Assembly (NCBI GenBank): GCA_965649825.1
Contig: OZ287697.1
Coordinates: 1,079,635-1,143,634, forward strand
DNA from: Penicillus capitatus
Lineage: Eukaryota > Plantae > Chlorophyta
Direction of reading: 5' to 3'
Length of the DNA stretch: 64,000 nt
Both the position numbers and the translations under genes were made by a program. The notes below the pieces were generated by a model that did no database searches, was not told where the DNA came from, and worked only from the letters and a program-made list of their open reading frames with translations. Shown piece after piece: positions 13,069 through 56,500 of this stretch (within the stretch, counting starts at the first letter, position 1; each line of letters starts with the position of its first letter).

Positions 13069-14426
13069 CTAGACAGCTGAGTATCCCTCAGGAAGAGAAG
13101 ATCCAGTTGAGCCGGCCAGATCGGCGTCTGCCATGTAAGAATCGGCCAACTGGATTCTCTTGATGTTATCCTGTTCCTTCACCAGCGCATTTCCGTACGA
13201 CATCAGCACGGTCAGGTTCATCTCAACCTTGTCAAACTTCACAGCGCCTTCTTTGGAATTGACCAGACGACGTCCGACGTTCTCGACTCCCAAATCCGTG
13301 ACGAACTCGCGGACCTTATCATCATAGACGCGCGATCGCAGAGCGCCGAAGAAATCGATGGACTGATTGGGGAATCGATCGACGAGCTGTTCGACGTCGG
13401 CACGGCTCAAGTTATCTTCCTGGAAGATTCCCATACAGATGCCGATTCTGTCCTCCCTTGTCGGATTCCAATAGTACTTCTCCATCCGTCCGTCACGGAT
13501 CAGCGGCGCATAGAGCGTGGAGAAATCGTTACCCGTACAGATGATGGGCACGCGAGGAATGGTCTCCTCCTTGTAGACCCCGGGCAGCTGGACATTCGTC
13601 GGATTGTCGGCAATGTTCATCAGCGTGGCGTTGACCATCTGATTGTTCACGGTATACTGTGTGGCATCTCCCATGCGTCCGGCACCGGCGTCCAGATCAT
13701 TGATAAAGAGGGCACACATCTTGCCTTTCTTAATGGTATCGGACGCTTCTCTGTATCGCTGACGGATGAGCTTCGCCGGTTCACCAGCATTGCCCGATTC
13801 CAATTCGCCGGCAGACATGACGATGGGACTGATGTTGAGCTTCTTAAAAGCGAGGTTGCATTGGAAGGTCTTTCCTTGACCTTTGCCTCCCCAGATCCCC
13901 AAAATGAGCGGGACCTTGATCTTGGGCAGCTCCATAAAGTTCTTGGCGATGTGGATCGTCAGTTTGTCCAAGAAAGCGGGCGCAATGTAATAGCCTTCTT
14001 CGATATTGCCGAAGGAGCGTTGGGAGGTTTTGATGTAATCTGTCGACGACAGCACGGCGTTGTGTGTCCCGTCCAATCCCTGAGCTCCCTGAAAGAGGCT
14101 ATCCACCATGTCACGTCCGCGCGTGATGTCTTGCTGCATAGAGAGTCCGACACACGAACGAACATACCCTTTGGCTGACGGAGGTATCGACGACGTACCT
14201 GATCATCTGAGATGTCTTCGTCCAGGCCACGGAACTTGCCGATTTGACTTTTGCTCTTCATGAACACGGTCGCGCCGTTGTGCACCTGGAGAGCAGAAGA
14301 TCGTGGCGGCGATAGGTGATGTGACGTTACCGTCGTCGAGAGACGCGCACCGCCGATGGAGCGCGATGACGGACCGAGGGCAGCGACAGGACGCGCGCAG
14401 GAAGACGGCGCGGCATGGCATCTCAT
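13069..14426 (-). CDS. RCA: Rubisco activase (short form with no redox C-terminal extension)
   Basis: Transit peptide, EDISDDQ|[16 protein letters not shown], Walker [62 protein letters not shown]. Confidence 0.97.
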
Positions 14427-26295: not shown

Positions 26296-29200
26296 AAGCT
26301 TTCCTCAACCGTCCTGAAGCAAGAGAACACCGACAACAGGAACGACAGCTTCGAGGGGTGAGCACAGAACAGCCTCACTAAACAAGAAAAAAAAAAATAC
26401 TGAAGTGTCTTGCACTTAGGCACCACGGGAAGCACGTGCTTTGTTTCAAGCTTCGAGTACGGAGAGCGAACCGGACGAAGGTGCCCCTCACACATCTGTT
26501 ACCACCAATTCCAGCACTCAGCTGTCTGTTCGTGTGCTGCGTAGTTCAATGTGGAATAGATGAAATTGCTATCGGCTTCTATTTGGATGCCGCATCGCGT
26601 ACATGGCGCATCACCGATACTGTATTGGACGATATCGACAACGATTTGCAGCGACTTGTCGATTGCACCGAAGAAGGCGATACGATTCTTTTCGATGTCA
26701 CCGGCATGATCGTCGCTCTGGCCAAACGTGTGACGATTCGATGGCCGTTGACGATCACAGCCGACATCGAAGATCGAGAACTGGTCGATGGCATCTTTCC
26801 AGAAGCGCCCAGTCGAGCAACGATGGTCTGTCCTTACGAAAACGAAGGCATCTTTCTTGTGAAGTTCGTTGCTATGATGGCTCTGTCTGCGACTGAGACA
26901 GTGGTTGCTCAGGGCCAAAAGCATCATCTTTGCTAATCTCGCATTCGAGCGCTGCATTTTTGAGGACGGCGAAGCGCCAGGCGCGATTATCGAAATCGAC
27001 AAATGCTCATCGCAGCGCTCCACTGATATTGTCCGCTTTCACCACATCGGTTTTAACGGAAATCGTATGATCGATGCCGTGGGTCTCAGGATCGACGCTC
27101 CATCGTGCGCCGAGCTCGAAATGATCGACATTGAGTTTACCAACAACATGTGTTTTGGCGCCTGCGGTGCCGTGCTCGCCGAGAAGAGCACGTTACGGGA
27201 CGTGACAATCGAAGGCAATACCTTCTCCATCAGGGACGGTGCCAAACCTGCTGTGATCTATGGCGGTTACGGTTCCGACACCATCGCCAAACGTGTGACC
27301 GTTAACGATAACGAATGCGCTGCATTCCACATCGAAGAAGGATTCATGACCGTGACCGATTCTACCTTTTCCCGCAACGGAATCATCGGAATAGAGAACG
27401 AGATCGAAATGGGCGGATGTTTTCACTTGGATGACGCTGGATTGACGATCGAAGATTGCGAGTTTCATCAGAACACTGCCGAAAACGGCGGCGTGATCAT
27501 GGGCGTCGAATCCGACGTCATCGCAACCCGATGTACATTCGAAAATAACACAGCCATTATGGGAGGCGTCATGTATTTTGGCGATGATACTTCACTCTCT
27601 ATCCAACGGTGCCAATTCGCATCAAACAGTGCCGGAGAAGATGGCGGTGTTCTTTTCGCCTCAGAGACAGAAGTGGATATTGCCAACAGCACCTTTACGG
27701 ACAACATGGCTGAGAGAAGAGGCGGATGTGTCTTCCTGGAGCGCTTCAGCACGTTTGAACTGTTGGGTGCGTCGCTGCGACGCAATAATGCGCTCGATGG
27801 AGGAGCAGTGGCCGTCACGGATCGATCGACTGGCAACATCATCGATTGCGACTTCATCAAAAACACGGCAGATGAAGGCGGCGGTTCTTGCATTGTGGAT
27901 GAAGCCAGACTCACTCTCCGTTATTCTCGATTCACCGAAGGCACAGCATTGCTTGGAGGATTCGTACATGCCAAGCGTGCCTCAGTCGATCTCGGCAATT
28001 TGACGTTCGTCGGTGGGACAGCGCGTGATGGAGGTGCTATCCATGCCATGTACCAGAGTCGACTGGATGTGGACAATGTGACGTTGGAAGAGAATCAGGC
28101 ACGTCAGGATGGCGGCGCTGTTTACATGGCCGAGAATTGCACAGCGAATGTGACCGAAACGCAGTGCCATGCGAATGTGGCCAAAAGAGATGGCGGATTT
28201 CTTTGCGCCGAGGCATCATCGACACTCAACATGCGCCAGTGTTCTGGTAAAGATCATCGCGCGTCGAAAGGCGGCGGAGTCGTCATCGGAAGAAGCTCCA
28301 GTCGCATTCAGATGGACGATGTCACGTTACGATCGAATGAAGCCGGTGCAGGAGGTGTCGTTCTTCTGCAGTCTGGATCGTCTGGCGTCTTCACAAACTG
28401 CTCCTTCTCAGGCAACGCTGCTGATCAAACCGGTGGCGTCATGCATATCGAAGACGCGAATCTGGAGATGCAAAGGTCGACATTCTCGACAAGCCATGCG
28501 CAACGAGCAGGATTTATTTTTGCGTCGAGCTCGACATTCGATATCGCCGATTGCACTTTGAAGAAGGGATCAGCGGATGATGGTGGATGCGTCTACGTCG
28601 ATCGAGGAGGGTCCTTTACCGGCTATAATGTATCCCTTAGTCGATGCGAAGCCAAGAAGAACGGCGGAGCGATTTACGTTCGTGACGGGCCAGACGTGCT
28701 ACTGCAATTCTGTCGGGTATCGACGACGAAGGCTAACGAGAGCGGCGGTGTCCTTTTTTCACACGGCGCTTCGATCGCCATCGAAGATTCTTCATTTGTC
28801 GATAGTGAAGCCGATCGATTCGGCGGCGGCATTTATGCTACGCAGCAAGGCTCGCTCGAGATGCTCTTTTCTTCCATCGAGAAGACATCGGCGAGCGATG
28901 GAGGCGCCATCGCGATCAGTGCTAATGTCACAGCAAACATCACAGAATCTAGTTTTACCAAGAACGCAGCGACTGACAGAGGCGCGTCGTGGTTCATCGA
29001 ATCATCGATCGCCACGTTTAGCGCGAGTGAATTCGTCGACGGTACCGCACATTTGGGCGGACTCGTCTACATCACCAATCGATCCTCCGTGGACATCCAA
29101 GAAGGCAATTTCGAAAATGGCGAGAGTGAACAGGGCGGATGTCTATCGGCAGAGCTCGAAACGCAGTTGGTGCTAGAAAACGTGGATATGGACGAATGCA

Positions 29201-32200
29201 GAGCGAGAGGAATCGGCGGCGGTATTGTCTTAAGGCAGATGTCGAAAGCAGATATGACAGATGTCCGCATCCGATCGACCAGCGCGAATGCCAGTGGAGG
29301 GGCCCTTTTCTGTTCGAATTCCGAACTCAGCGCCAAGCGATTTGAGATCGAAGACAGCTCTGCCGGTGTTCGAGGCGGCGCCCTATATGCTGCCTCTTCT
29401 AGCGTCGTCTCTCTGAAAAAATCCACAGTACACCATACCTCTGCGATGATCGGTGGAGCAGCAATGCTTGAAGCCAATGTGTCTGCCGTATTCGAAAATG
29501 TGACGTTTACGGAATCGATCGCTGATCGTACTGGTGGCGTGAGCTACGTCGATCGATCGAGTTTAGCAATCGTCGACAGTCTAATCGAAGACAGCAGAGC
29601 GCAGGACGGCGGCTGCGTTTATTCGCGGCAGTCCTCTCTGAACATCGACGACTCGATCATGCGCAACTGCACGGCGATCGAATCTGGTGGATGTGTCGTG
29701 GCTGAAAGCGGTAGCTCTGTCGTTATGAGCGATGCAAGTCTGACAGAAAGCTCGGCGAGATACGGTGGGGCCATCATGCTTCAGAATTCGACGCTAAATG
29801 CACAGCGCCTGCACGTTACGAAGAGTCGAGCACGTTATGATGGCGGAGCGATCTTTGCTGGAAATGCATCGACGGTGCTCTGCGCCGCATGCCATCTAGA
29901 AAACAATGCAGCTAAGGGTAAAGGTGGGGCCATCTCTTTCGACTCTGCCACGTCACAAATTCTCGCTCTGCAATTCGACAAGAGCACCATTCAAGGAAAC
30001 ACTGCCGATCAAGGAGGTCAGTATGAATCAATTCTTCTGTACCCTCTGGCATAGGGTTACGAATTGTGTAGGTGGTCTCTACTTCACCAGCAGCAATCGC
30101 AGCGCAGAATGTGCGAATCCAGGAGCGCAATGTTCCGTTGCCGTTCTATCGGAGACGACCTTTGTCGACAACGAAGCGTCTTCCATCGGCGGCGCTCTTT
30201 TCTCTAATGAACTGACTGCCATTCGAGTCGCCTGCTCATCACAGGATAAGCGTCCCAGATCCGAATTCTACGCGAGAGAGGAGTGGGAGTCCATGGGCAG
30301 TTTAAAATCGAATGCCGATCTATGCAAGGAGTGGAAAGGAAATCGAGCCAAAACTTATGGACCGGCAGCCGCTTCCTACATTCGCACTGTCAAGAAAACG
30401 ATTCACTACGATCACGATAACACAAGCGTCGTTGTTGAAGGAAACACGCATGTCATCGCCAATCAGCGCAGTGGATCGCACTTACCCACAATTCTGCTTC
30501 AAGCTACTGATGAACTCGAACAGGGCCCCGCCATCGGCGCCAGCAATGAGACGATTGAAGCGATCATGTCGTCACCGGACAATTTTTTCGTGGGATCGAT
30601 CCGCGTGTCTCTCGCCTTTGGCGAAGCCGTCATCTCCGGCATTGCTGAATTTGCGCCGCCAGGGACTTACCAAATCCTGATCGCCTTTAACGATGAGAGC
30701 ATGGAGGCCTTAGCTCTTGAGGTTCACATTCGAGAGTGCCTCATCAACGAAGCATGGACGGTGGAAGGACCAACCTGTCGAGAATGTTCGGCCGCAACGT
30801 ACAATTTTTTGCCCGATGACGAAATGGGCTGTCGTCCGTGTCCCGATAAGGCAATCTGTGAGAGCCGTGTGATCCAACCAAAGAAAGGATACTGGCATCA
30901 GACTCCGTGTTCCGAACACATCCAACGATGTACCAAATTCAAAGCCTGCGATTTTGCAGACCGCGAGAATCTGCTGATGGAGATCGGTGACGCCACAGAG
31001 ACGTGCGATTTCGAAGAAGACCAGTTGACGGAATACACACACGCACAATGTCGCAAAGTACGTGCAACTAATCTCACACTTTTTCTCACAATCGTCGTTG
31101 CCATGCATAGGGCCACTCAGGTCCGCTATGTGGCTCCTGTGAAGCTGGATACGGTCGATCGCAATCATCCCTCTGCAAAAACTGTTTCATCAAGTTTGGC
31201 AATGTGATGCTGGTTTTGCTCTCGAGTCTGATTCTGCTGTCCCTCTGCTGTTTGTTCGTTCGGAGCAACGTGGTGTCGTTTTTATCCACGATTCGAAGAG
31301 AACAGGTGCCGACGTCGCCATCCGAAGGCCCGTCAACCAGTAGCAACTTATCACCAGCGGATATGAACGCGGTGAAAGTATGGTCCTCAGAAAGGATAGT
31401 AAACAGCGGAAAGACGCCTCAGCAGGTTTCGGATAGACGCCAGATGACCGTCAATTCTCCGGAACTGGCCAAATGGAAAACGGCAGAAATGTTTAAAGTA
31501 TAAGCATCGCTCACTCTTACGACGGCAAAGAGTGATGTATGGTGCGATAGATCATCATCAACTATCTCCAGATGATCGCTCTTGCAGTGAGTGTGAATGT
31601 GGATTGGTCTGTCACGTTGGTCGCTCTCTACGAAGCAGCAGGCAAGCATCGGATCCCTCTGAGTGCGTTCGTTCGTACATTGCTTATCGTCTAGGTTTCG
31701 TGAGTGGCATGACGACGGAGACAACGCATCGATCTGTCGAATGCTTGGCGTCTGATGAGGCATCCGTCATCGGCGTCGTGATCGATCTCGTTCTACCTCT
31801 CATTGTCATTGTTCTATTCGTGATCTTTTGGACACTAGCCATGGTTAGGTACAAGGAAAACGTGATCTATCTACTGAGAAAGATCATCCTTAGTGCCACG
31901 GCTGTTTTCTACATTTCCTACCTATCTCTCACAAAAACAATAATAAACATCCTTATCTGTGTCGAAGTTCACGATTCTGTCGATTTCATAAATGATTCCA
32001 CTGCATATTACTGGGCAATGGATACCAGTGTTACATGCTACAAGGGATCGCATGTCGTTCTTGCTAGTGCCTTGGGCTGGCCTCTCTTTGCCCTGTTCAC
32101 TATAGGCTTTCCCATGACACTCGCTGGCGTTGTTCTGTGTTGCGTTCAGGACGATTACCAAAAAGGAAGGGTGTATGACACGACAGGTATCATGTATCGC

Positions 32201-32737
32201 TCTTACAAAAAGCGATTTGTGTATTGGGAGTCTCTGATTCTGCTGAGAAAGGCGATCCTTGCAGTGGTCGTTGCCTTTTCTTACTCACTAGGTCCCAATC
32301 TCCAGGCAGTACTCGCTGTCTTTGTTTTGGGACTGGCCCTGTATTCACAAGCGCTGTGCCGTCCTTTTCGTGAGGAGTTTGAAGTTTTGAATGAGATGGA
32401 AGGAATCTCGATTCTTGCTTCTTTGCTCACTTTTGTGTCGAGCATTTTTTTCGAGGACGAACGCGTGTCAGATAGCATCCAGATTTTCATAACGGTGATC
32501 GTTACCCTGTGCAATCTCGGACTGTTTTTCTTTTTCCTTGTTTTCTTTTTCAGACTCGGTGCCAAGTACATAAGAACGATCTTGGACAGAGAAGACGTGG
32601 CCTACGATTCTGACGGTGAAACGTATCATATTCTTAAGGTCTATTTCTTTGATCATGTGTTTGGACATATTCGTGGAGCGATTGGTCGCTGTGGAAAACG
32701 CATTTCCCGCACGTTGAATCGCCGATCCGATGCTTAG
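26296..32737 (+). CDS. Giant surface protein, paralog 1: Pmp-like parallel beta-helix repeats + Cys-rich stalk + multi-TM domain (5' end unresolved)
   Basis: A 1049-codon exon with many GGA[ILV]/GG[CV] and FxxN motifs; CxxC..CP..C..IQPKKGYWHQTPCS; last exon 31532-32737 with hydrophobic helices and YWAMDTSVTCYKGSH / YWESLILLRKA. Homologous to features at 53543 and 60048. Confidence 0.85.
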
Positions 32738-33379: not shown

Positions 33380-35238
33380 ATCGATTCTTCTTTGAATTCT
33401 AAATCGCTTTCACGCGATCGAGTGTTTACGAATAAGAGGAGCTTTAACATTAATGTGATGACATAATAGGAAGGGACCTCAGCCGAGGTCTGAGTAAACT
33501 AGAAACCTGCTGTTCAAACACACTAAACGGACAACAGAGGTCCGTAAACTTGGCATTCATGTGAGAATTCTGGTTCAGGGAAACCGGTGTGTAAATCTCT
33601 AGAAGCGGTATGTAAGCAAGGCGACTTCCTTGTTGTATCTTCTGATCGCACACGTGACCTCGTCTTCGTCCGAGACCACACATGATGGAGTCTCGAGAAA
33701 GAATCCAAAGGACTTCTCCCAGCCCAGCCATTTCATCCCGTCGAAGGAGTTTCTGTAGAGGTAGGATCCCTCTCCGACAGCAAAACAGTGTATCTTGCCA
33801 ACACCGGTGGTCACACATTCCGGTGCCGAATGAAAGACACCTCCCAGATCGACCCAGTCGCGCCATTTACCATCGTAGGTCCTCTGCATAACGCTGTTCT
33901 CTTTAACACCCAAGCTGAAAATGTCCATCCTGTTCGAACTCCATGACGTCGCTGATGGACGCCCATTCACTAGACCTCTGTGAACATCATAGCCGCTCGG
34001 CCAATCTCCTGAGACAAGTTTGTATTTTTCATAGAGTCCCAAGTCCATTACGGTAGCGAAGCAGGCGAAGTGGTCCTTGTTGAGCGATGTACATCCAAAG
34101 GGACCAAAAAAAATCCCTCTCAAGTTCGTGCGACTTCCCCATTTTCCATTGACTGCTCCAATGTGATGGCCTCCGTTGACGTCTCCTCTGAACATACAGT
34201 CGACGGCGGAGGGCGATCGGGCGATACAGGAAGGAACTTCCATCAATCTCCCTCCTTTGGACTGCCAGCCGCTCCATTTTCCGCCAGAAAACGTCTTGAT
34301 ATAGAGTGCAACGTTGGTGCCCAGCACCAGGACGTCGATGATGCCGACGTCGCGACTGACACATTCGATCTCGTCGACGATGGTACCGCCGAGATCCTCC
34401 CATTCGCTGTAGACACCCTTGTCAATGGAAATGTGCATGACGTTCGATTTCGGTGTTCGGATGAAGCAGTCCACACGGCCTGGTCCCCATGACGTGCAGC
34501 ATGGGCGACTTTGTGCCGTGTTCCCCGAGATCCGGAAGCGTTCTTGTGGTTTCTTGTTCACAGCTTCATTTCCGTCGATGTTGACATTGGCGTAAGAAGA
34601 TGTCGCGAGAGCGCCCTTTTTTGCCGTCATTTCCACGCCGTCGCATTTGGAAGCTCCTGAGCAGTCGTTTCTTGTAGAGCCAGTAGCAAAATTCAGTTGG
34701 ACGAGCGCCAACAAGAACAGCTGAACGCTAAACGGAGACATACCCGCTTCGGCGAATCTTTTTAATAATTAGATATCGGCAAGATGCGGCCCAATGACAA
34801 CAGACAAACGCAGATGCTGCAAGAAAGAATGGCGGAATATAGTACGGTCGCGAATACCACGTGGCGAGGAGTGTACGAATCTGGTTGTTTTCGGGAGGCG
34901 AGGCCAATCGAGTTCCTTGCCGACGCGAGTGGGCGACGGTGACGCAACGCATCGCCTTGCAGCATTCTTCTAACAAGGAGACTTCTGCCGCTGGATCATC
35001 CACTGGTGATTTGCTACGGACCAGTCAGTCCTTCAGTTCATGTTCAGCCCACAGAATCTGCTTCAGTAGAGGCTCCCCAGCTGCTCTGATTGTTCCTGGA
35101 TTCGGTATTGTTGTGTGTCTCGACGAATCAACATGATCGCGGCTGGTTGTTTTTTGCAGTCGTAGTACGCTTTTCTCGCTCACTGGACTTGATCCATGCG
35201 ACGACGATGATCATCGTTCGAAATCGATCGATCGATCG
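33380..35238. repeat. Duplicated lectin unit 1 (3' flank + CDS + 5' flank)
   Basis: 33380-35238 aligns with ~35675-37516. 34487-34827 is identical to 36772-37112. 33466-33583 is nearly identical to 41633-41750. Confidence 0.93.
33599..34741 (-). CDS. Secreted 7-bladed beta-propeller lectin, PLL/PHL (DUF346-repeat) type, copy 1, intronless
   Basis: Signal peptide MSPFSVQLFLLALVQLNFATG, then seven ~46-aa repeats of the form P-x-C-x-S-W-x-x-x-R-x-D-[CIV]-F...W-x-x-W-x-x-L-G-G, the PLL-type blade consensus. Confidence 0.8.
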   Translation of the reverse strand: MSPFSVQLFLLALVQLNFATGSTRNDCSGASKCDGVEMTAKKGALATSSYANVNIDGNEAVNKKPQERFRISGNTAQSRPCCTSWGPGRVDCFIRTPKSNVMHISIDKGVYSEWEDLGGTIVDEIECVSRDVGIIDVLVLGTNVALYIKTFSGGKWSGWQSKGGRLMEVPSCIARSPSAVDCMFRGDVNGGHHIGAVNGKWGSRTNLRGIFFGPFGCTSLNKDHFACFATVMDLGLYEKYKLVSGDWPSGYDVHRGLVNGRPSATSWSSNRMDIFSLGVKENSVMQRTYDGKWRDWVDLGGVFHSAPECVTTGVGKIHCFAVGEGSYLYRNSFDGMKWLGWEKSFGFFLETPSCVVSDEDEVTCAIRRYNKEVALLTYRF

Positions 35239-35883
35239 CAAACGAAAACAAAAATCTCTGTTTATGCTAAGCTGCGAAGACTCTACAAATCATTGACAAT
35301 CTGTCCTGCGACGTCATCATGGACGGTGCAGATCTCATCGCCACCATACGGAAGGCAAACACCGACTACTTTCTAGGCACTTGGATTTGCGACAATAGTT
35401 CAAGGGAGAGAAACCGCGTCTGCTTCATACGCAATCGCGATACTCTCGCCTTTTGCCTCGAGCACGGTGTTGACGCATCTGCTCTTAGCTTAGTGAAAAG
35501 ACGGGATGTCTCTGATGTGCGCCCTGATAGCTTCTGTTTTCTAGGTGCCTCTACGATGCTGTCTTGTTTTCCCATATCTATTCATTCACGATACAGTCAG
35601 TTCTCTTTACGACAGAAAAAAAGGTCACCAATCTTTTCTTCCACATTGATGGCACAACATTGCCGCCTTCATGGATTTTCATTTAAATCGCTTTCCACGC
35701 GAACGAGCGTTTAAGAATAAGGCGAGCTTTAACATTAATGTGATGACAGAATAGGAAGTGACCCCAGCAGATGTCTGACTAAACTAGAAACTTGTTGTTC
35801 AAACACACTAAACAGACAATAGTGCTCCGTAAACTTGGCATTCGTGTAAGAACTCTGGTTCTGGGAAACGGTTGTGTAAATCT

Positions 35884-37026
35884 CTAGAAGCGGTATGTAA
35901 GCAAGGCGACTTCCTTGTTGAATCTTCTGATCGCACACGTCACTTCGTCTTCATTGGAGACCACACATGATGGAGTCTCGAGAAAGAATCCAAAGGACTT
36001 CTCCCAGTCCGACCATTTCGCACCGTCGAAGGAGTTTCTGTAGAGGTAAGATCCCTCTCCGACAGCAAAACAGTGTATCTTGCCAACACCGGTGGTCACA
36101 CATTCCGGTGCCGAATCAAAGACACCTCCCAGATCAACCCCGTCGTGCCATTTACCATCGTAGGTCATCTGCAAAACGCTGTTCGGTCGAACACCCAAGC
36201 TGAAAATGTCCATCCTGTTCGAACCCCATGACGTCGCTGATGGACGCCCTTTCACTAGACCTCCGCGACCATAAAAGCCGCCCCATCCTGTTCCCGGGGT
36301 CCAGTATTTTTGTGAAAGGATCAAGTCCATTGAGGCAGCGAAGCAGGCGAAGTGGCCCTCGTTGAGCGACGTACATCCAAAGGGGCTAAAAAGAATCCCT
36401 CCTAAGCCCGTGGGTTTTCCCCATTCTCCATCGACAGCTTTAATGTGATAGCCTTTGCTAGCCGGTCCTCTCATAATGCAGTGGACGTTGGAGGGCGTTC
36501 GGACGACACAGGAAGGCACCTCCATCAGCTGCCCTCCTTTAGACTCCCAGTCGCTCCATTTTCCATCAGAGAATGTCTTGACCCAAAGTGCAGTGTCAGT
36601 GCCCAGCACCAGGACGTCGATGATGCCGACATCACGACTGACGCATTCGATCTCGTCGATGATGGTACCGCCGAGATCCTCCCATTCGCTGTAGACACCG
36701 TTGTCAATGGAAATGTGCATGACGTTCGAATTCGGTCCTGTTCGGACGAAGCAGTCCACACGACCAGGTCTCCATGACGTGCAGCATGGGCGACTTTGTG
36801 CCGTGTTCCCCGAGATCCGGAAGCGTTCTTGTGGTTTCTTGTTCACAGCTTCATTTCCGTCGATGTTGACATTGGCGTAAGAAGATGTCGCGAGAGCGCC
36901 CTTTTTTGCCGTCATTTCCACGCCGTCGCATTTGGAAGCTCCTGAGCAGTCGTTTCTTGTAGAGCCAGTAGCAAAATTCAGTTGGACGAGCGCCAACAAG
37001 AACAGCTGAACGCTAAACGGAGACAT
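35884..37026 (-). CDS. Secreted PLL-type beta-propeller lectin, copy 2, intronless
   Basis: 380 aa. The first 85 aa are identical to copy 1, with the same seven-blade pattern. Confidence 0.8.
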   Translation of the reverse strand: MSPFSVQLFLLALVQLNFATGSTRNDCSGASKCDGVEMTAKKGALATSSYANVNIDGNEAVNKKPQERFRISGNTAQSRPCCTSWRPGRVDCFVRTGPNSNVMHISIDNGVYSEWEDLGGTIIDEIECVSRDVGIIDVLVLGTDTALWVKTFSDGKWSDWESKGGQLMEVPSCVVRTPSNVHCIMRGPASKGYHIKAVDGEWGKPTGLGGILFSPFGCTSLNEGHFACFAASMDLILSQKYWTPGTGWGGFYGRGGLVKGRPSATSWGSNRMDIFSLGVRPNSVLQMTYDGKWHDGVDLGGVFDSAPECVTTGVGKIHCFAVGEGSYLYRNSFDGAKWSDWEKSFGFFLETPSCVVSNEDEVTCAIRRFNKEVALLTYRF

Positions 37027-38334
37027 ACCCGCTTCGGCGAATCTTTTTAATAATTAGATATCGGCAAGATGCGGCCCAATGACAACAGACAAACGCAGAT
37101 GCTGCAAGAAAGGATGACGGAATACAGTACAGTCACGTATACCACGTGGCGAGGAGTGTACGAATCTGGTTGTTTTCGGGAGGCGATGCCAATCGAGTTC
37201 CTTGCCGACGCAAGTGCGCGACGGTGACGCAACGCATCGCCTTGCAGCATTCTTCTAACAAGGAGACTTCTGCGGCTGGATCGCCCACTGGTGTTTTGCT
37301 ACGGAGCAGTCAGTCCTTCAGTCCATGTTCAGCCCACAGAATCTGCTTCAGGAGAGGCTCCCCAGCTGCTCTGATTGTTCCTGGATTCGGTATTGTTGTG
37401 TGTCTCGACGAATCAACATGATGACGGCTGGTTGTTTTTCGCAGTCGTAGTACGCTTTTCTCGCTCACTGGACTTGAGCCATGCGATGACGATGATCATC
37501 ATCCTCCGAAATCGATGGATCGAATGATCGACGTCTTCGACGGTCCCATCACGTAGCGATTGGATCGCCGACATTGCGACTGACTCGGAAAGGTAATAAT
37601 GCCTTTTCTGTTCAAGTTGAATGACGCTCGATTTGAGTCGAACAAAGATCTGCGACGAAAGATGCGTATGTGACACTGTCATGAAAAACATCACATGGTT
37701 TACGGCATTTATGATTTTTAGGTTCACAGGAAACGTATTCTCGCATGGCTCGATTTCCTTTTCGCGCTTACGACAACTACGATTGGGATACGGTGGCAAG
37801 GAGTAGAAGAATGAAATGTGACGCTGATCGCAACGTTTGACTGATTTACGGTACTGTCCAGTCGCTGGAGTGCTTGTGTCTAGTTTCCGCATTCTAAACA
37901 ATGGACATCGTTCGAATCTGTTCTTCGTTTAGAAGATCATCACGATCGCCTAACTATGCCGGTCAAAAGGAAAATGTAAAGAACAGAGATCTGTAAGATG
38001 ATTGCCACAAGAACTCCGAGTTTTATTCGGGCGACGCGTGGCTGTAGTCACTGACTTCTGATCTTACGTTGGTACCACGGAGCAATGCACACCAATCCAA
38101 ATCGCGAGACTTGCCTTACACATTCATCATTCCTTTCATAACCTGTTAGACGACGCCGATGAAGTATAAAGAATATTCCAGTTTAATCTCGTCTTCGAAG
38201 ACTATTGAACACACTAGACACAGACATCTTATGTTTTTTCTTTTAATGGTTTTACAACTCCTTTATGAAAAGATCAGGAGTGCGTCTGTGTTCAGTACAA
38301 GATCAGCTCGTAACAGGCACAGAAGCCAACATGT

Positions 38335-39057
38335 CTAAAGCCAAATGAAATGAAATGTGTACGATTGAAGGTCGGGTGACTCCAAGGAGTGCAATGGTCT
38401 TCTGTTCTGCGTTCCGCGGGGTTCAGGTAGGGTCCCGATGGGCCGCGTAGGGCTGTTGAAAATGCGAATCGGGAGGATCATGTAGTCTAGGTTAGCGTAC
38501 GATGTCGCTTTTCCGGCGAAGATCTTCTCGTGCAGGTTCCTCGAGATGAACACTCTAAGGTTGCAGATGGGAAGCCATTCTGGCAGCGGATTGCCCGAGG
38601 GATCCCTCTTTCTGCGGTTCAGGAGGTGCGGTGCAGTCATGTATGTGTTCAGGAGTCCCCGTGGGGGACATTTCCTATCGAGTCGCGTTTTGAATGGCGA
38701 TGCTGTCGAGGGCGTCTTCTGCAGCGATGCCTTCATCGACGTTCCCAATGACGACGGGATTTTGCCTGTTGAAATCGATTGGTACGGGTAGCTGACTTCA
38801 AATTTTCCGAGATCGTCGAGTTCAATGTTCCACGTGTCTTCGTCGTCCTTCAGATGTTGGTCCAGGATCTTCCCAAAAGTCTTGAATTTATCTTCGCGAA
38901 TCTGAATGTAGTATCGGCCTCCACGATCAGAACGAATGTCTTCCACAAGTTCCTTCAGGTTCGATAACTGTAAAGTTCTTTCTAGACTGATGCCGAGTTG
39001 ACGGAACGGCGGCCGTTGTCCCTTCAGATATCCGGTTTGAACTGAAAACTGCAGTCG
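38335..39057 (-). CDS. Orphan ORF B: open in the same frame immediately after the TGA of ORF A, with no in-frame ATG until deep in the ORF
   Basis: Stop-free from 39057 to the stop at 38335 (RLQFSVQTGYLKGQRPPFRQLGISLERTLQLSNLKELVEDIRSDRGGRYYIQ...). No family recognised. Confidence 0.45.
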   Translation of the reverse strand, partial: RLQFSVQTGYLKGQRPPFRQLGISLERTLQLSNLKELVEDIRSDRGGRYYIQIREDKFKTFGKILDQHLKDDEDTWNIELDDLGKFEVSYPYQSISTGKIPSSLGTSMKASLQKTPSTASPFKTRLDRKCPPRGLLNTYMTAPHLLNRRKRDPSGNPLPEWLPICNLRVFISRNLHEKIFAGKATSYANLDYMILPIRIFNSPTRPIGTLPEPRGTQNRRPLHSLESPDLQSYTFHFIWL

Positions 39058-39960
39058 TCACAGCGAATCTGGGCCTTGATCTCCTGCGTCTGTTTGCGGA
39101 TCTCGCGGGCCTGAGAGATGCGCTGCTTCTGGGCGGGTCTTTGCTATTGTGAGCGTCTCCTGGGGCATGCTATGGCGGACAGCAACGCGATATGATCTGG
39201 GCGGGGAGATGTGCGCGAGGTTGGCTTCAACGGATGGGGGAGGCGGCGGAATCGAGAGTGTGGACGGGACCAGGGTACAGTGAAAACTGAGGCAGGTTTG
39301 CATCTCTGCCAGGAGGAGACTGGCTTCCTTGAACATGTCAATGCATGCAGCATGGTCGGCCGGCAAAGCCTTCTGGAAGTGCTCCAAGGTGCTTCGTACT
39401 TTTTCAAAATCTTGGGCGAATGCAGTCAGAAAATCCGAGGGAGTGAATGTTTCCTGGAAGCGGGCTATCTGTGAGAGACAGGAGGTCTGGGCGTGTCGTT
39501 CATAGTAAGGGCCTTCGGGGGTCAGCAGAAGCGAGTCTCTGGAACGTTCGTGGAGGCTGACGAGGCAGAGCTGCTCGGCATCCCGCCGTTCGTGGGCTGT
39601 CAAGTAGGCGCGGATCTTCGAGATGCGCTGCACTGGGTCCAGAGTAGCGGCTGCTTGTGTGGGACACGCTCTGACAGCAGCGTTCACGAGAATGAGCTCG
39701 TCCTTGCCCATTGCGTCGAGAACCTCGGGGGACCGGCGTAGATCGCGCCGGTATCTGACCGTGTAAGCGGCCTGGGCAACCGCCGTGCGCACTGGGTCAG
39801 GGGCGGTGCCAGGACCTCCGGACTGCGAACCGAAAGGCTGCATCGTGCGTATCGCTCGTGTTCGGACACCAACGGTCGGCAAGAAATTTTGGCGGGCGGA
39901 ACGGAAGTGTCGTACGAGAAAAAGGTCGGGACATCTCATGTTGATTTCCTCGAATCTCAA
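39058..39960 (-). CDS. Orphan ORF A (300 aa), no recognisable domain
   Basis: Long uninterrupted ORF with a helical central part and a Pro-rich C-terminal part, ending CTG TGA at 39058-39060. Confidence 0.55.
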   Translation of the reverse strand: MRFEEINMRCPDLFLVRHFRSARQNFLPTVGVRTRAIRTMQPFGSQSGGPGTAPDPVRTAVAQAAYTVRYRRDLRRSPEVLDAMGKDELILVNAAVRACPTQAAATLDPVQRISKIRAYLTAHERRDAEQLCLVSLHERSRDSLLLTPEGPYYERHAQTSCLSQIARFQETFTPSDFLTAFAQDFEKVRSTLEHFQKALPADHAACIDMFKEASLLLAEMQTCLSFHCTLVPSTLSIPPPPPSVEANLAHISPPRSYRVAVRHSMPQETLTIAKTRPEAAHLSGPRDPQTDAGDQGPDSL

Positions 39961-40420
39961 CCAGCAAATTCCCAGTTACCGACATCATAACGTAAGCCTG
40001 ACCTTGTTGATCTTGCGCGACACAAGTGGTTCTTCTGTTTTTACGATTGCGATCGATCGATGAATCAATCGTCACAAACGACGAAAGGATAAATTCCTCC
40101 CGTGTATCAGATCGTGCTTCTCTCATATCTTCTCTAATCGACCACCGTTCTGTTAGGACCGGAGGCATCGTCGCATAGTCTGAACGCATCGGGACCTGTA
40201 AGACGAAAGGAGCCAGACGGGTATTGTTACAGCATCTGCACAGGTATCATAGAAACAGATCACTTCAATCTTTCTTGACGTTCTGTGATCTAACAGTACC
40301 GCGTCAATGGATAGTCAGTCGAGTTCGCGTTGTACGATAATTGATTAGAGACGAAATGACAGAAGTACGATCCGATGATCGAGATGGACTGCTGCTGTTT
40401 TCCGTGACACCTGAAACACA

Positions 40421-40442
40421 GATCGATCGATCGATCGATCGC
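40421..40442. repeat. (GATC)n microsatellite, the longest of many GATC/CGATCG runs
   Basis: GATCGATCGATCGATCGATCGC. Similar runs occur at 7031-7054, 12861-12912, 20148-20174 and 35223-35238. Confidence 0.9.
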
Positions 40443-40537
40443 GAACGTAAAGCAGAAACCTCTGTATCCGCTAAGCTGCGAAGACTCTACAAAACACTGA
40501 CGATCGTCCTGCGACGTCATTATGGACGGTGTTGATC

Positions 40538-40758
40538 TGTCAGCGGAAGGCTTCACGTTCTTACAGAGCAAGGGTATCTACAAGGCCACGTCTACGGATT
40601 TATACGCTAATAGTGACAGGACAGGTGAGTCAGCAGCCTCTCAGAGCCATAGGAAAAGGACTCTGAGGTGACGTTAACCCCGAATGAGCTCCCCTTCAGA
40701 GACAGAACCCTTAGAAACCGAGGCAGTCACGATGTGACTTGCTACAGTCATTCTGACA
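40538..40758. mobile_element. Solo-LTR-like insertion, 221 bp
   Basis: Begins TGTCAG and ends CTGACA (TG...CA, 6-bp inverted ends), flanked by a 5-bp direct repeat TGATC (40533-40537 and 40759-40763). The homologous empty site is at ~35325-35340. TATAAAT lies on the minus strand at 40598-40604. Confidence 0.8.
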
Positions 40759-41783
40759 TGATCTCATGGCCGCCATACCGAAGGAAAATCACCAAGAACT
40801 ATCTAGGCACTTGGTTCAGCGACGATAGTTCAGGATATAGAAACGGCATCTCGGAGACACGCCGATCGATCGCGATATTCTCGCCTTTTACTTTGAGTAC
40901 GGTAATGAGTCATCTGCTCGTAGCTGGTGAAAAGTCGTCACGTTTCTGATCTGTCCCCCACGGATCCTGTTTTCTAGGTGCCTCTACGACACTGCCTTGT
41001 TTTCCTGAATCTATTCCTTCGCACTACATTCAATCCTCTTGATTGGGAAAACGAGCTCACCGATCTGTCCTCTGGCAGTGATGGTAGAGTGTTGCCTTTA
41101 TGGCTATTCATTCTAATCGCCTTCCATGTGTATCTCTATATCTTCCAAAGGCGTTCCATAGCACCATGTCTAAAGCACGGAATAGCGAGGAGCTAGTTCG
41201 AACGGAGAGACACAGTTTCTTTGTGCTGGCGGCTGTTGATCACACTCGCAAGAAAGCACGTGTAAGAGAAATGTTGAAAGCGAACACGCCTTTCTCCCCC
41301 TCACAGTCTAGCGCGCATTAGGCCTTATTCATCTCGACCAGATCAATGGCTGTTGTTCCGCCTGGATGTATACATACCTTCGTTGTCAATAAGCATGTTG
41401 CCTCTCGCAGCACATCACACATAGGGTATGCAGCTTCGCCGTGACAGATTTGTTTGCCATTCGGTCAGCCAATGGAAGCAGAGCGCATTTGCGACTGTGA
41501 ACAGAAGATCGGGATCAGACCGATTCCTTTGCTCGGCGAAAAGAGGATCTGCATGAGTCCGACGGCGTCAACGCAACAAGGCGAACGTGTGTCTAAGGAA
41601 AAAAGGAACATTAACATCAACGTACTGACACAATAGGAAGGGACCTCAGCCGAGGTCTGACTAAACTGGAAACCTGCTGTTCAAACACACTAAACGGACA
41701 ACAGAGGTCCGTAAACTTGACATTCATGTGAGAATTCTGGTTCAGGGAAAATTGGCTGTTCAGGGAAACAAGTATGTAGATTT

Positions 41784-43051
41784 CTAGAAGCGGTGTGTAA
41801 TAAAGACGACTTCCTTGTTGAAACTTCTGATCGCACACGTGATCTCGTCTTTGTTCGAGACCACGCATGACGGAGTCTCGAGAAAGAAGCCGAAGGACTT
41901 CTCCCAGCCTGACCATTTCTCACCGTCGAAGAAGTTTCTGTATAGGTAGGATCCATTTCCGACAGCAAAACAGTGGATCTTGCCAACACTGGTGGTCACA
42001 CATTCCGGTGGCGAATCGAAGACACCTCCCAGATCGACCCACTTTTCCCATCCTTTAGCACCGTGTGTCAGCAGCACGACGCTGTTATTCTTGGCGTTTA
42101 AGGCAAAAATGTCCATCCTGTTGTTCGATTTCCATGACGTCACAGATGGACGCCCTTTCACTTGACCTCCGTGATCACTATATCCGGGCAGCCATTCAGC
42201 TGAGATTTGGAATTTTTCAACAAGGGTCAAGTCGATTGAGGCAGCGAAGCTGGCGAAGTGGTCCTTGTTGAGCGATGTACATCCAAAGGGGCCAAAAAGA
42301 GTCAATCCCAAGTTCGTGTATTCTGTCCATTCTCCATCGACAGCTGCAATGTAATGGCCTTCGTTGAGTTTATTTCTGACCATACAGCCGACGGTGGAGT
42401 GCGTTCGGACGGCACAGGAAGGCACCTCCATCAGCTCACCTCCTTTAGACTGCCAGCCGCTCCATTTTCCGCCAGAGAAAGTATTGATGAAGAGTGCAAT
42501 GTTGGTGCCCAGCACCAGGACGTCGATGAAGCCGACATCACGACTGACGCATTCGATCTCGTCGATGATGGTACCGCCGAGATCCTCCCATTTGCTGTAG
42601 ACACCGTTGTCAATGGAAATGTGCATGACGTTCGATTTCGGTGCTCGGATGAAGCAGTCCACACGGCCTTCTTCCCATGACGTGCAGCATGGGCGGCTCT
42701 GCGGCTCTGCGCCGATGATCTTGAACGCTTCAGTGACGCTTTTATCCACATCGCCGTTGGCGTCCTTTAACACACAACGCGTCAGAAGAAAACTTTTGGA
42801 ACAGCGCGACGCACCTTTGTCTTCGCGACGGCGTACGGCAGAAGGATGTCGTTGCGGCGTGTTTGTGCAGTTGCAACGTCAACGTTGTGCGGAACTGCAT
42901 CCCGCGGAGCAGACAGGCGATCGGCTTCCGCTCCGTCAAGATCTGACTGCGCCGCCATCTTGGAAGTCGGGATCCAGTACCCGAAAACGCCGTTGCAGGC
43001 GCACAAAAGCGTCCCTGCGATGATCAGCGCCGAAAGGCTTGTCGTCTGCAT
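41784..43051 (-). CDS. Secreted PLL-type beta-propeller lectin, copy 3 (different signal peptide/pro-region, one 50-nt intron)
   Basis: MQTTSLSALIIAGTLLCACNG...AKTK|intron ~42768-42817|DANGDVDKSVTEAFKIIGAEPQSRPCCTSW..., followed by the seven blades. Confidence 0.8.
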
Positions 43052-53542: not shown

Positions 53543-56500
53543 TCATCTTTCATCCCTCTTTCGTCTGCGAGACGCCTTGCTGATCTTTGCCCAGATATAG
53601 TCCACCAGATAGACCTTGAAGATATGCGGTGCCCTACGACTGTGATCATATGCGATGTCTCTCATTTCCAACACCACTTTCAGATAGTCGGCGGCATAGT
53701 GTAGAAACAGCAGAACCAAACAGAAAAACAGAACGAGATTGCACATCGTGAGGGCGATCGTGATCAGAACCTTTACGGTATGAGACACCCGATCGTCGTT
53801 GAAGAAGAGACTGGAGACGAACGTCAAGAGAGACACGAGGATCGAAATGCTCTCCAGCTCATTGAGTGCACGGAACTCGTCTCGGAACGGTCGGCAGATG
53901 GTCTGAAAGTAGAGAGAGATGACGAGGACGAAAACGGCGAGGACGCTTTGGAGATTGGCGCCCAGAGGATAGGAGAAAACGACGATCGCTGCGAGCAAGG
54001 CCTTTCGGAACATGATCGTCGATTCCCAGAAAACGAATCGCTTTCGGTAGGCACGGTACAGAAAACCGAAGACATCGTAGACCATCGCGTCGGTATCGTC
54101 GTCCTTCACGTTCTTGATGATGGCATAGCCGACGGTCAGAGGAAAGCCAAAAGTGACGAGGACGAGCAGCGGCCAGCCCAAGAGACTGCTCAAGTAAGCG
54201 TGGGATCCTTGATAGCAGCGAACGCTTGTGTCGATCGCCCAGTACTCCGAAGTGAAATCGTGAACAGCATCGATCGAATCGTGCACGGTGAGGCAGGTCA
54301 GGGTGCTCAAGATCGTCTTCGTGAGGGAGATGTAGCTGACGTACAGGACGGCTACGGTGCTCAGAAGGATCCGCTTGATCAGATACCACCTGTCACGTCT
54401 GTGCTTGATCTTGACGAGGGACCAGAAGAGAACGAAGATGGCGATGACGACGACGGGGACGACGATATCGATCAGTGTGCTCAGAACGGACTTCGAAACC
54501 GATCCGCCTTCTGATAGACAGTCCACAGATCGGTTCACGGCTTCCGATGTGAGCCCGCTGACGAATTCTGCGAAAACACTCGATCGTTGCGCGGCTAGAT
54601 CGAGAGGGATCGATCGGTTTACCTGCGATTTCGAAGAGAGTGATCATCGTCATCGTCCATCTGACGTTGACGGACACGGCCACGGCTATCACCTGGAGGT
54701 AGTTCACCGTGATCTACGTCGAACAGGGAATCGGTTGTCGTGGAGATCGGGCACGTAAGTATACCTTGAACACTTCGGCGGCTTTCCATTTGGCGAGTTC
54801 CGCTTCCTTGACTGTTAGCTGCTGCTGATCGTGAGCAATCGATTCGCCCATTCGGACGGAGCATTCCGGAGGCGTCTGATCGATGGTCTCTCTTTCGATC
54901 GTTTCGCAAGCGATCTCTGTCGATGGATCGTTTGGCGGTTGTTGGTAGATCCCGTGACAGTATTGAGGACGCTGTCGTAACAGAGATATCAGATTGCTGC
55001 GCACGGTGAAGCTCGACAACGCCAGCAGCATGAAGAGAGACAGCAGCACCAGAACGACGTTGCCCGCTCCGACAAAACACTCCTGGCACACGAGACCGTA
55101 AGATTTTCCGTAACCGTCCTCGCACGACCCACACAGAGGACCCGTGTGCCCCTATCGTGCAGACACACGTCAGCAGATGGACGCAGAGCAGAGAGACAGA
55201 CCTTTCGGCACTGGGCGTTGGTGTAGTCGGCGATGAAGTCTTCATCAAATCGGCACGTCTGGACGCCATCGGTGATTTCTTCAAGGTTCTGCTCACGCTC
55301 TGCAAAATCGCAGGCCCGACAGGTAAGGCATCTCTGCAAGTATGGAGAGCAGGGTGTCTGGTGCCAGTATCCTTGCTTCGGCTGGATGACACGCGAGGAG
55401 CAATCTCCGTTGTCCGGACATGGAAGGCACCTGTCGCCAGACGAGAAGCTGTATGTCGAGCTGCTGCATGCCTCGCAGACGGAGGCGTTCACTGCCGGCT
55501 CCTCTCCGATGGAGCATTCCCTGATCTCGACGGTGACGACGAAGTCCTCGAGGGCCGATTCGCTGAAGGAGACGACGATGTTGTAGCTGCCCGGCGGCTT
55601 GAACCCAGTGACCCCGGAGAAGTTCCCTGAGCCGTCGATGAGATAAAGATCCAATGTGCCAGAGAAGAAGCCGTCGTTAGACGCCATCGTGGCGACGACG
55701 GCGTCCTGTTCGATGCCTATCGCGGGACCGTGGCCAAGGGCGTCTCCGACGGCGACGACGACCGTCGGAATGGCGACTCCGCTCGGGTGGTCCTTCACCG
55801 TGTAGCTGTTCCCCTCGACGACGATCGATTCGTCGGTGTCTTCGACGTAGAGAGTCTTCACGGCCGTCCGCGCGTAGGACGACAGCGATGGACCGTAAGC
55901 TCCTGCCTCGTTCCCGCTCCACCCTGGACAGGAAGTGGCGTCGGGTCCGATCGGACGCATTCCGTCCAGCCGCTCCTCAGAGAAGAGGTCGTCGGGTCCT
56001 TCTTCCGTCGACGGCGCCGAGCACTCGACCCTGACGGCAGACAGGTCGTCAGCGAAGATCAGGCCTCCGGCTGTCTCGGCTCTGTTGTGCGTGAAGCCCG
56101 TCTCGGACAGCGCGACTCTCGTGCAGCTGGCGTTCTTCGACGAGCAGTCTACGACTCCGATGTTACCGACGAAGTGCAGTCCACCTGTCGGGAACAGCAT
56201 TCTATGCGCTGCATTGTTGGTTTGACAGAAATGTACGTACCTCCGTAGTCTGCGGAATTGCGGCTCACTGTGCTGTTATAGAGCTGAAGGGCCAGAGGTT
56301 GTGTTCCGCTAGACTCGACGGAGATCGCTCCGCCCCTTCCCCTGGCCTCGTTGTCTTCGAACAGGCACTCCGAACACGAAAACCTCGACGAACCCTTCTC
56401 CGACACCGCCCCGCCGTTTCGCCGCGACTCACAGTCCCCCATCCGAAGCTGTCGCGCCCGCACAACGGACGAGTGGAGTGCCAAGCAGCCTCCTGCCCTC

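Follow-up and report, generated by a model that had tools for sequence, protein, structure and literature searches.

A cluster of divergent PLL-type seven-bladed beta-propeller genes in the green alga Penicillus capitatus

Introduction

The best-described relatives of the proteins considered here are the PLL-family lectins of Photorhabdus (PLL, PLL2-5 and PHL; PropLec7A in UniLectin). Each repeat of PHL and PLL contributes a hydrophobic, fucose-binding (H) site composed of a Thr, a stacking Trp (in the motif 'ALW') and a second Trp (in 'WSxW'), together with a polar, galactose-binding (P) site composed of a stacking Trp (the second W of 'WHIW') and a strand-B Arg-x-Glu (PMC5584973, PMC12203525). 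Intra-blade disulfides are absent from the Photorhabdus lectins, in which only inter-subunit bridges occur, in PLL and PHL (PMC12203525). The subject of the present work is a set of three linked genes, here called c1, c2 and c3, on the minus strand of a 64,000-nucleotide stretch of DNA from the green alga Penicillus capitatus (GenBank assembly GCA_965649825.1, contig OZ287697.1, positions 1,079,635 to 1,143,634), which is referred to below as the window and in whose numbering coordinates are given. The products of these genes share with the Photorhabdus family the seven four-stranded blades of about 45 residues each, the WxxW...LGG ending of most blades and the single-domain architecture of about 310 residues. 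They differ from it in their eukaryotic host, in a predicted endoplasmic reticulum signal peptide and a disordered N-terminal linker, in the five intra-blade C-x9-C pairs and one putative inter-blade disulfide of c1, and in the loss of about half of the Trp residues, of the P site and of any match to the DUF346 repeat model. To our knowledge no eukaryotic PLL-type propeller has been characterised, nor any member of the subfamily bearing Cys pairs, and what is known of structure and function comes entirely from Photorhabdus.

That subfamily is otherwise bacterial, and is exemplified by proteins from Povalibacter (HKE93938.1, fused to an M23 peptidase), Nitrospira (MDF0653170.1, fused to a tyrosinase), Deinococcus roseus (WP_189003164.1) and Nitrosomonas (MCB1985814.1). 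These bacterial propellers resemble the algal ones in their C-x9-C pairs, at one per blade, which align column for column, and also in a PSC...DCF motif and an N-terminal secretion signal, and they gave the best non-algal scores in an exhaustive search, at about 38% identity locally. Unlike the algal proteins they retain all seven pairs, about 23 Trp residues and a DUF346 match, and they usually occur in fusion with enzymatic or other domains, whereas the algal proteins stand alone, have lost the blade-5 pair and appear to have a rewired Cys in blade 2. Other multivalent propeller lectins with inter-blade sugar pockets are AAL/FleA (six-bladed), the tectonins such as Lb-Tec2, and CV39L/BP39L (seven-bladed), but these belong to different repeat families and are a much weaker structural match to c1 (TM-score 0.5-0.66). 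Tectonins are described, in work cited in PMC6943638, as acting in innate defence against microbes that bear O-methylated glycans. Among green algae, the Bryopsis lectins (bryohealin/BPL-1, BPL-2 and BPL-3/4) resemble c1-c3 in forming secreted or released families with tandem duplication and a patchy distribution. Their folds, on the other hand, are unrelated: they consist of F-type and H-type domains, in keeping with an earlier statement that siphonous-alga lectins have other folds, and a genome survey of Bryopsis reported no propeller lectin (bioRxiv 10.1101/2023.11.22.568388).

Results and discussion

Fold and family membership

Sequence and fold together confirm that c1-c3 are seven-bladed propellers of the PLL/PHL superfamily. 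All three genes were found as intact reading frames on the minus strand at the coordinates given for them in the original prediction, which had described a cluster of three secreted PLL/PHL-type lectins, and a phmmer search against PDB sequences returned Photorhabdus lectins only: PLL2 (E=3e-27), PHL (5e-19), PLL3 (3e-15) and PLL (2e-14), with PLL4 and PLL5 also among the matches. An AlphaFold2 model of c1, built from a 26-sequence alignment, has a pTM of 0.80 and a pLDDT of 84 overall, rising above 90 for residues ~70-380. Residues 1-62 are disordered in the model, and the 26 strands that follow make up seven four-stranded blades, the N-terminal strand (residues 66-75) completing blade 7 and closing the propeller. 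Seven blades are visible in the family alignment also. When the model was compared with the PDB by Foldseek, the best 22 matches were all to PLL, PHL or PLL2-5 (TM-score 0.77-0.81 on the target, E~1e-17), and the next class was that of the six-bladed AAL/FleA lectins, at a TM-score of ~0.6. The proposed PLL-like fold is borne out by the model.

Precomputed matches to PF26607 (Beta-prop_PLL) at E<=1e-5 were found on c1-c3 and on all of their paralogues. Scans of c1-c3 against Pfam-A and NCBIfam gave no meaningful match, the NCBIfam match to CV39L being marginal (24.6 bits against a cut-off of 350). Since PF26607 lies outside the Pfam-A library that was used, and since the DUF346 signature has been lost, the empty Pfam scan is not evidence against homology: c1-c3 are real but divergent members of the family.

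Gene models and predicted secretion

c1 (33599-34741) is a single-exon gene whose uninterrupted reading frame encodes 380 amino acids, laid out as a signal peptide, a disordered linker of ~50 residues and a PLL-type propeller spanning residues ~66-380. The predicted signal peptide, MSPFSVQLFLLALVQLNFATG/S (the slash marks the predicted cleavage site), occupies 34679-34741 and has a hydrophobic core score of 2.1. c2 (35884-37026), likewise a single uninterrupted exon of 380 codons, is a tandem duplicate of c1, and its predicted signal peptide (36964-37026) is identical to that of c1. The third copy appears among the raw open reading frames in two parts, a frame of 329 codons at 41784-42773 and an upstream, signal-peptide-like frame of 89 codons at 42782-43051. 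Between them the DNA reads as a 50-nt phase 0 intron with GT-AG borders (42765-42814, GTGCGT...TTAAAG), the removal of which joins exon 1 (42815-43051, encoding the predicted signal peptide MQTTSLSALIIAGTLLCACNGVFG/Y and the start of the linker) to exon 2 (41784-42764, encoding the end of the linker and the entire propeller). The spliced product (43051-42815 joined to 42764-41784) has 405 amino acids and no internal stop. In P0005, the c3 orthologue on a sister contig, the equivalent 51-nt stretch is in frame, and the gene was hence called as a single reading frame. Amino-acid identity in the family alignment is 82% between c1 and c2 and 70% between c1 and c3.

All three copies also have in common a 3' flank of ~190 nt (repeat family D3), which is a probable 3' untranslated region and lies on the minus strand at 33408-33598 for c1, 35693-35883 for c2 and 41575-41783 for c3. 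No TGTAA or AATAAA signal was found within 400 nt downstream of any of the three genes, and a poly(A) check on the short contigs carrying the clade member P0034 gave no positive signal. The absence of introns from c1 and c2 had been pointed out, together with a genome described as intron-dense. The two genes are indeed intronless, but the genome is not visibly intron-dense in this window, where exons of the neighbouring genes run for 1-3 kb without interruption, so that this feature of c1 and c2 is unremarkable. Taken together, the gene models and the structure of c1-c3 are almost certainly correct.

Signal peptides were judged by eye and by a hydropathy heuristic. Every full-length member of the family has a hydrophobic N-terminus with small residues at positions -3 and -1 (A-T-G/S in c1 and c2, V-F-G/Y in c3), which agrees with the signal peptides that had been proposed for all copies. 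The C-terminus of the propeller is the blade-7 strand, and c1-c3 have no apparent membrane anchor. On these features c1-c3 are predicted to be secreted proteins.

Cysteines shared with a bacterial subfamily

A C-x9-C pair is present in five of the seven blades in both c1 (C82-C92, C172-C182, C217-C227, C309-C319 and C354-C364) and c2; c3 has four complete pairs, the second Cys of blade 4 being replaced by Ser. That most blades carry Cys residues about ten apart had been correctly noted. The further suggestion that the pairs arose as an adaptation to secretion is contradicted by a joint alignment: the columns occupied by the algal cysteines are 100% Cys across 21 bacterial proteins of the Cys-pair type, as against 7-17% Cys in other bacterial PLL-like proteins. 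Many of the top bacterial-type matches carry seven Cys pairs, the pattern of the subfamily being one C-x9-11-C per blade from strand A to strand B.

Relative to that arrangement, blade 5 in the algal clade has lost its pair and blade 2 its strand-B Cys, which leaves C127 of blade 2 (window ~34361-34363) orphaned. The clade also has a specific extra residue, C81, the first C of a 'PCC' motif (~34499-34501). C81 is present in 18 of the 19 sequences that keep the orphaned C127, and is missing both from the two sequences that retain the ancestral blade-2 pair and from all four sequences without C127. Because the presence of C81 thus goes together with C127 having lost its ancestral partner, it is tempting to propose that the two form a rewired, inter-blade disulfide. 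If C27 and C33 in the linker are likewise paired, then all 14 cysteines of c1 could be accommodated in disulfides, as would be expected of a secreted protein.

Duplication, gene conversion and a hypervariable cassette

c1 and c2 lie within tandem duplication units on the minus strand, each including 5' and 3' flanks: unit A (33400-35235, with c1) and unit B (35684-37523, with c2; repeat families D1-D7) are 90.3% identical over 1.84 kb at a spacing of 2,285 bp. The similarity is very unevenly distributed. The first ~100 codons of c1 and c2 (34441-34741 and 36726-37026) are identical, with zero synonymous changes, and the ~300 nt upstream are 99% identical; beyond these codons the synonymous rate (dS) between the two is 0.2-0.5, and other tracts are common to c1 and c3. 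Given the identical start of c1 and c2, their diverged remainder and the tracts common to c1 and c3, the three genes read as a gene-conversion mosaic, and the 5' identity of c1 and c2 as a recent conversion tract that includes the promoter-proximal region.

An alternative haplotype or strain, on a contig of 1.46 Mb, has two PLL genes only and lacks c2. On that contig (L002:6706-11549) there is one gene where the window has the c2 and c1 pair, and the region of the flanking PMP-repeat gene (a family described below) is 98% identical. The c1 allele on the alternative haplotype differs from that in the window by 0-5 positions per 100 nt at the two ends and by 13-38 per 100 nt in the central ~300 nt. 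The haplotype comparison of nonsynonymous (dN) and synonymous rates gives dS=0.24 and dN=0.28 for the cassette (33947-34249, minus strand; residues 165-265 of c1), against a dS of 0.02-0.06 and a dN of 0-0.04 in its flanks. Because the allelic differences cluster in this way while the flanks are near-identical, blades 3-4 are described here as a hypervariable cassette.

Among paralogues, dN/dS (omega) is 0.65-0.68 overall, 0.3-0.5 in blades 1-2 and 5-7, and 1.1-1.35 at residues 176-290. The low values in blades 1-2 and 5-7 indicate functional constraint. The difference in omega between residues 176-290, a region chosen post hoc, and the flanks has Fisher p-values of 0.001, 0.016 and 0.066. Positive selection in blades 3-4 was considered and is not claimed, because omega is not significantly above 1 and dS is raised.

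Relatives and origin of the family

A phmmer search over 1.84 billion representative sequences returned 5,382 clusters at E<=1e-3. The best matches beyond the algal paralogues are multi-domain proteins of 600-1,100 amino acids with bacterial signal peptides, and all named relatives are bacterial (Povalibacter, Solirubrobacterales, Nitrospira, Nitrosomonas/Burkholderiales, Deinococcus roseus and Alteromonadaceae). The closest full-length non-algal relative, P0030, is encoded among smpB, dapA-type, LysM-M23, YkuD and SLT genes. In bacteria the Cys-pair propeller is found fused to M23 peptidase, tyrosinase, cytolysin-family, metalloprotease/reprolysin-like and amidase domains (P0033, P0059, P0051, P0030, P0302 and P0305), which is consistent with a module that targets surface glycans. 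No named eukaryote was among the matches of this exhaustive search or of two word-indexed searches, one of them made with the family profile. The repeat is thus mainly bacterial, as had been stated, but it is not new to eukaryotes: a table in a review of 2024 records IPR007132 for Chlorophyta, Bigyra, fungi and some animals (PMC11186620), and DUF346 homologues were found in fungi by a 2023 survey (PMC10481521).

Neighbour-joining analysis of 127 propeller domains united all algal and eukaryote-like sequences in a single clade, with support from 95 of 100 bootstraps, on a single long branch. The phylogeny against bacterial proteins that had been suggested as a check accordingly recovers a eukaryote-type clade, without fixing its sister group. 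The alga has several further paralogous loci, the family having diverged to about 30% identity, and orthologue pairs such as P0015/P0016 link two algae. A 5.4-kb Logan contig from an unrelated sequencing run, ERR4592246 (P0069), carries two tandem PLL-type genes, of 321 and 333 amino acids, that belong to the eukaryote-type clade, so tandem arrays of such genes recur outside this locus.

An ancient transfer from a bacterium to an alga is, in our judgement, fairly probable; its direction, its age and its uniqueness are what we infer from these comparisons. The horizontal acquisition put forward in the original prediction is plausible in so far as the family has a bacterial affinity and the algal clade is monophyletic. 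A recent event does not fit: the G+C content at third codon positions (GC3) is host-like (0.59-0.62 in c1-c3 against 0.49-0.68 in host neighbours), an intron has been gained, the paralogous loci have diversified and orthologues are present in a second alga, so any transfer must have been ancient.

Proposed role and alternatives

The reading that we favour, with slightly better than even confidence, is that c1-c3 encode secreted, disulfide-locked, multivalent propellers derived from a bacterial glycan-targeting module, which now serve as extracellular recognition proteins of altered specificity. A single ancient entry into an algal ancestor would have come from a bacterium bearing the Cys-pair propeller subtype, the source module being secreted and fused to peptidases, tyrosinases or cytolysin-like domains. 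The algal gene would have gained eukaryotic signals and, in c3, an intron, and would then have expanded into a multi-locus family. The locus would be evolving by tandem duplication and deletion and by gene conversion, with blades 1-2 and 5-7 conserved and the blade 3-4 cassette changing fast. The likely function would be multivalent, extracellular recognition of the surface glycans of microbes or other foreign bodies, or possibly of the alga itself. The specificity would have moved away from that of PLL and PHL in Photorhabdus, with their canonical pockets for fucose and O-methyl sugars. Copy-number variation, conversion tracts and the hypervariable cassette are counted in favour of this model as dynamics typical of recognition genes.

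Several results tell against it. That the binding of fucose and O-methylated sugars carries over from PLL and PHL to c1-c3 cannot be taken for granted, to judge from the binding residues as mapped through HMMER alignments and the family alignment. The canonical Thr/Trp/Trp triad of the fucose site is intact in only one of 21 blades, blade 2 of c2 (GTDTALW...KWSDW); elsewhere Tyr, Phe, His, Met or Leu stands in place of the stacking Trp, the residues at this position in blades 1-7 of c1 being M102, Y147, H192, Y237, M285, Y329 and L/V. The stacking Trp of the polar site has gone from every blade, with S, T, G, Y, T or S in its place, and R-x-E is missing from strand B throughout, R-x-D being found there in blades 1 and 5 only. 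The algal clade has ~12 Trp residues per propeller, against 22-23 in the bacterial relatives, and c1-c3 do not match the DUF346 repeat model (PF03984/IPR007132, 39 residues) even at E<=10, in a run in which the bacterial relatives matched at 3e-9 to 4e-34. Signal peptides and disulfides are putative, being read from the sequence. As to the cassette, an omega above 1 at residues 176-290, chosen post hoc, is not significant (binomial p=0.2-0.4), and selection explains the raised dS no better than does conversion from divergent paralogues or long-standing polymorphism. The proposed origin is affected too. The eukaryote-type clade grouped with the Cys-type bacteria in just 18 of 100 neighbour-joining bootstraps. 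A search for algal-clade motifs in 185,579 GTDB prokaryotic species genomes gave 31 pattern matches and no relative, and a bridging alignment against GTDB gave only three matches of 28-29%, in Anaerolineales and Rossellomorea, and no close donor. Finally, because InterPro-based tables place the repeat in several eukaryotic groups (PMC11186620), there is room for an older origin or for more than one.

Some features of the sugar sites have nevertheless been kept. The WxxW motif is retained in most blades, and the second Trp of the fucose site in blades 1, 2, 5 and 6. Tyr takes the place of the stacking Trp in blades 2, 4 and 6, and is also found at that position in PLL2. In blade 6, residues L328, Y329, N331, W338 and W341 are invariant among 16 family members. 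Since Tyr can stack on sugars, and given this invariance, one to three pockets may still be functional, the possible candidates being in blade 2 (Thr142, Tyr/Trp/Phe147 and Trp159) and in blade 6 (Leu328-Tyr329, Asn331, Trp338 and Trp341). With most of the canonical residues gone and no DUF346 match, lectin activity of c1-c3 is therefore plausible rather than established by homology, and we put the chances that they bind glycans at about even.

The same residues can be read differently, and it is conceivable, though we think it unlikely, that the fold has been kept as a scaffold from which carbohydrate binding was lost, the proteins having taken on a protein or other ligand or a structural extracellular role. 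The loss of half of the conserved Trp residues, the degeneration of the canonical sites in 20 of 21 blades, the missing DUF346 signature and the near-neutral evolution of blades 3-4 would all follow naturally, whereas the retained WxxW, the PLL2-like Tyr residues capable of stacking on a sugar, the invariant blade-6 pocket and the fusion of the module to surface-acting enzymes in bacterial relatives would not. A second possibility, also unlikely but deserving some weight, is a lectin directed at the glycans of the alga's own wall or matrix, with a part in wall assembly, in cell-cell or gamete adhesion, or, as had been suggested by analogy with the Bryopsis lectins, in wound-plug formation or protoplast aggregation. 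Parts in wounding and in the recognition of microbes, both put forward in the original prediction, are speculative. Such a role would suit proteins that are predicted to be secreted and multivalent, that belong to a family whose ligands include the O-methylated sugars that occur in algae (PMC6943638), and whose genes occur where genes for large PMP-repeat beta-helix membrane proteins, themselves probable surface proteins, are numerous. A housekeeping structural role is hard to square with polymorphism in copy number and a cassette that is hypervariable between haplotypes, and the known aggregation lectins of siphonous algae are of the F-type or H-type and include no propellers.

A more ambitious version of the favoured recognition model, which we regard as distinctly doubtful, would treat the family as a polymorphic recognition repertoire resembling those of innate immunity. 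The disulfide-locked scaffold would then present the blade 3-4 cassette as the diversified part that sets specificity, exchanged between paralogues through gene conversion and, like copy number, kept polymorphic between haplotypes. If this were true, it would parallel the variable lectin repertoires of animals, built in this case from a bacterial propeller.

With respect to origin, the alternative to transfer is vertical inheritance of an ancient eukaryotic or archaeplastid family since lost from most lineages. The records of the repeat in Chlorophyta, Bigyra, fungi and several animal phyla (PMC11186620) could be so explained, as could an algal clade that is deeply diversified, fully ameliorated and without an identifiable donor. 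Three sequence searches whose matches include no named eukaryote, the single long branch of the eukaryote-type clade, its derived Cys columns held in common with one bacterial subfamily, and a very patchy distribution against thousands of bacterial clusters make this improbable. An artefact, be it bacterial contamination, misassembly or decaying pseudogenes, might be suspected of a family so bacterial in character and known partly from metagenome assemblies, but it can be dismissed, since c3 has a spliceosomal intron, the locus is flanked on each side by eukaryotic genes on long-read contigs that reach 1.46 Mb and come from two samples, codon usage is host-like, and all of the reading frames are intact with an omega of 0.3-0.5 in the conserved blades.

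Genomic setting

The assignment of the window to an alga is upheld by its green-type Rubisco activase gene (13069-14139, minus strand), an uninterrupted exon of 1,071 nt or 356 codons whose product is 82-83% identical to those of Raphidocelis, Chlorella and Parachlorella. This places the host among the core chlorophytes, the enzyme being too conserved for a finer assignment. The G+C content of ~53% is close to the 52.4% reported for Ostreobium, which is no more than a hint of affinity. Directly adjoining it is a reading frame for the C-terminal domain of a GH81 endo-beta-1,3-glucanase (14637-15596, minus strand). Other host genes in the window encode a protein kinase, a threonine synthase and a mitochondrial carrier, and the neighbouring exons of 1-3 kb mentioned above include an uninterrupted reading frame of 3,150 nt at 26905-30054. 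No rRNA or tRNA genes were found in the window. Between c2 and c3 lie two reading frames on the minus strand, of 203 amino acids (38335-38946) and 300 amino acids (39058-39960), that match no Pfam family; similar unannotated frames occupy the corresponding position on a sister contig.

The locus is also represented in other assemblies. A 24.8-kb contig in an ENA long-read metagenome assembly contains an identical stretch of 21 kb, and in the same sample the 1.46-Mb contig carries the syntenic locus, adjoining kinesin genes. In a second sample, related genes are found on contigs of 0.19 Mb and 4.08 Mb, by genes for V-ATPase, cyclin, proteasome and ribosomal proteins, and paralogues adjoin Hira, C2, cyclin and proteasome genes. 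Contamination is excluded by the intron, by these eukaryotic neighbours on long contigs and by the host-like codon composition.

The most conspicuous neighbours are genes of the PMP-repeat family, whose products have a large ectodomain of the parallel beta-helix type, followed by a middle domain and, at the C-terminus, a multi-pass transmembrane region. Three copies lie in the window, at 26905-32737 (plus strand), ~53573-58806 (minus strand) and 60084->63999 (minus strand), with 30-52% mutual identity; further copies were found at L003:1503-6067, L006:645-5575 and L006:14796-17171. One PMP-repeat gene is only 860 bp from c1, and homologues adjoin PLL paralogues at two other loci. The idea of a functional pairing of PLL and PMP-repeat genes was downgraded, given three PMP-repeat copies in the window, two in L006 and varying orientations; the adjacency may instead reflect an island of genes for surface proteins. 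The same alga has a retrotransposon (RVT_1 and integrase domains; L005:2357-4053) at a distance of ~6 kb from P0055, a divergent PLL paralogue.

Implications

Within the PLL-type family c1-c3 are new and divergent, but they do not amount to a new kind of system. What is new here is the copy-number variation between haplotypes, the conversion tracts, the blade 3-4 cassette and the putative rewired inter-blade disulfide. Should the proteins turn out not to bind glycans, the family would be an ordinary case of an ancient transferred gene family. If they do bind glycans, a bacterial lectin architecture would be extended to the extracellular biology of algae, in microbe recognition, symbiosis or adhesion, and the family would show how specificity changes once other residues take the place of the canonical tryptophan pockets; a further use of the disulfide-locked propeller might be as a robust lectin scaffold for engineering. 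The locus illustrates on a small scale how a gene of old bacterial origin may turn into a dynamic eukaryotic family, through intron gain, duplication, conversion and allelic hypervariability.

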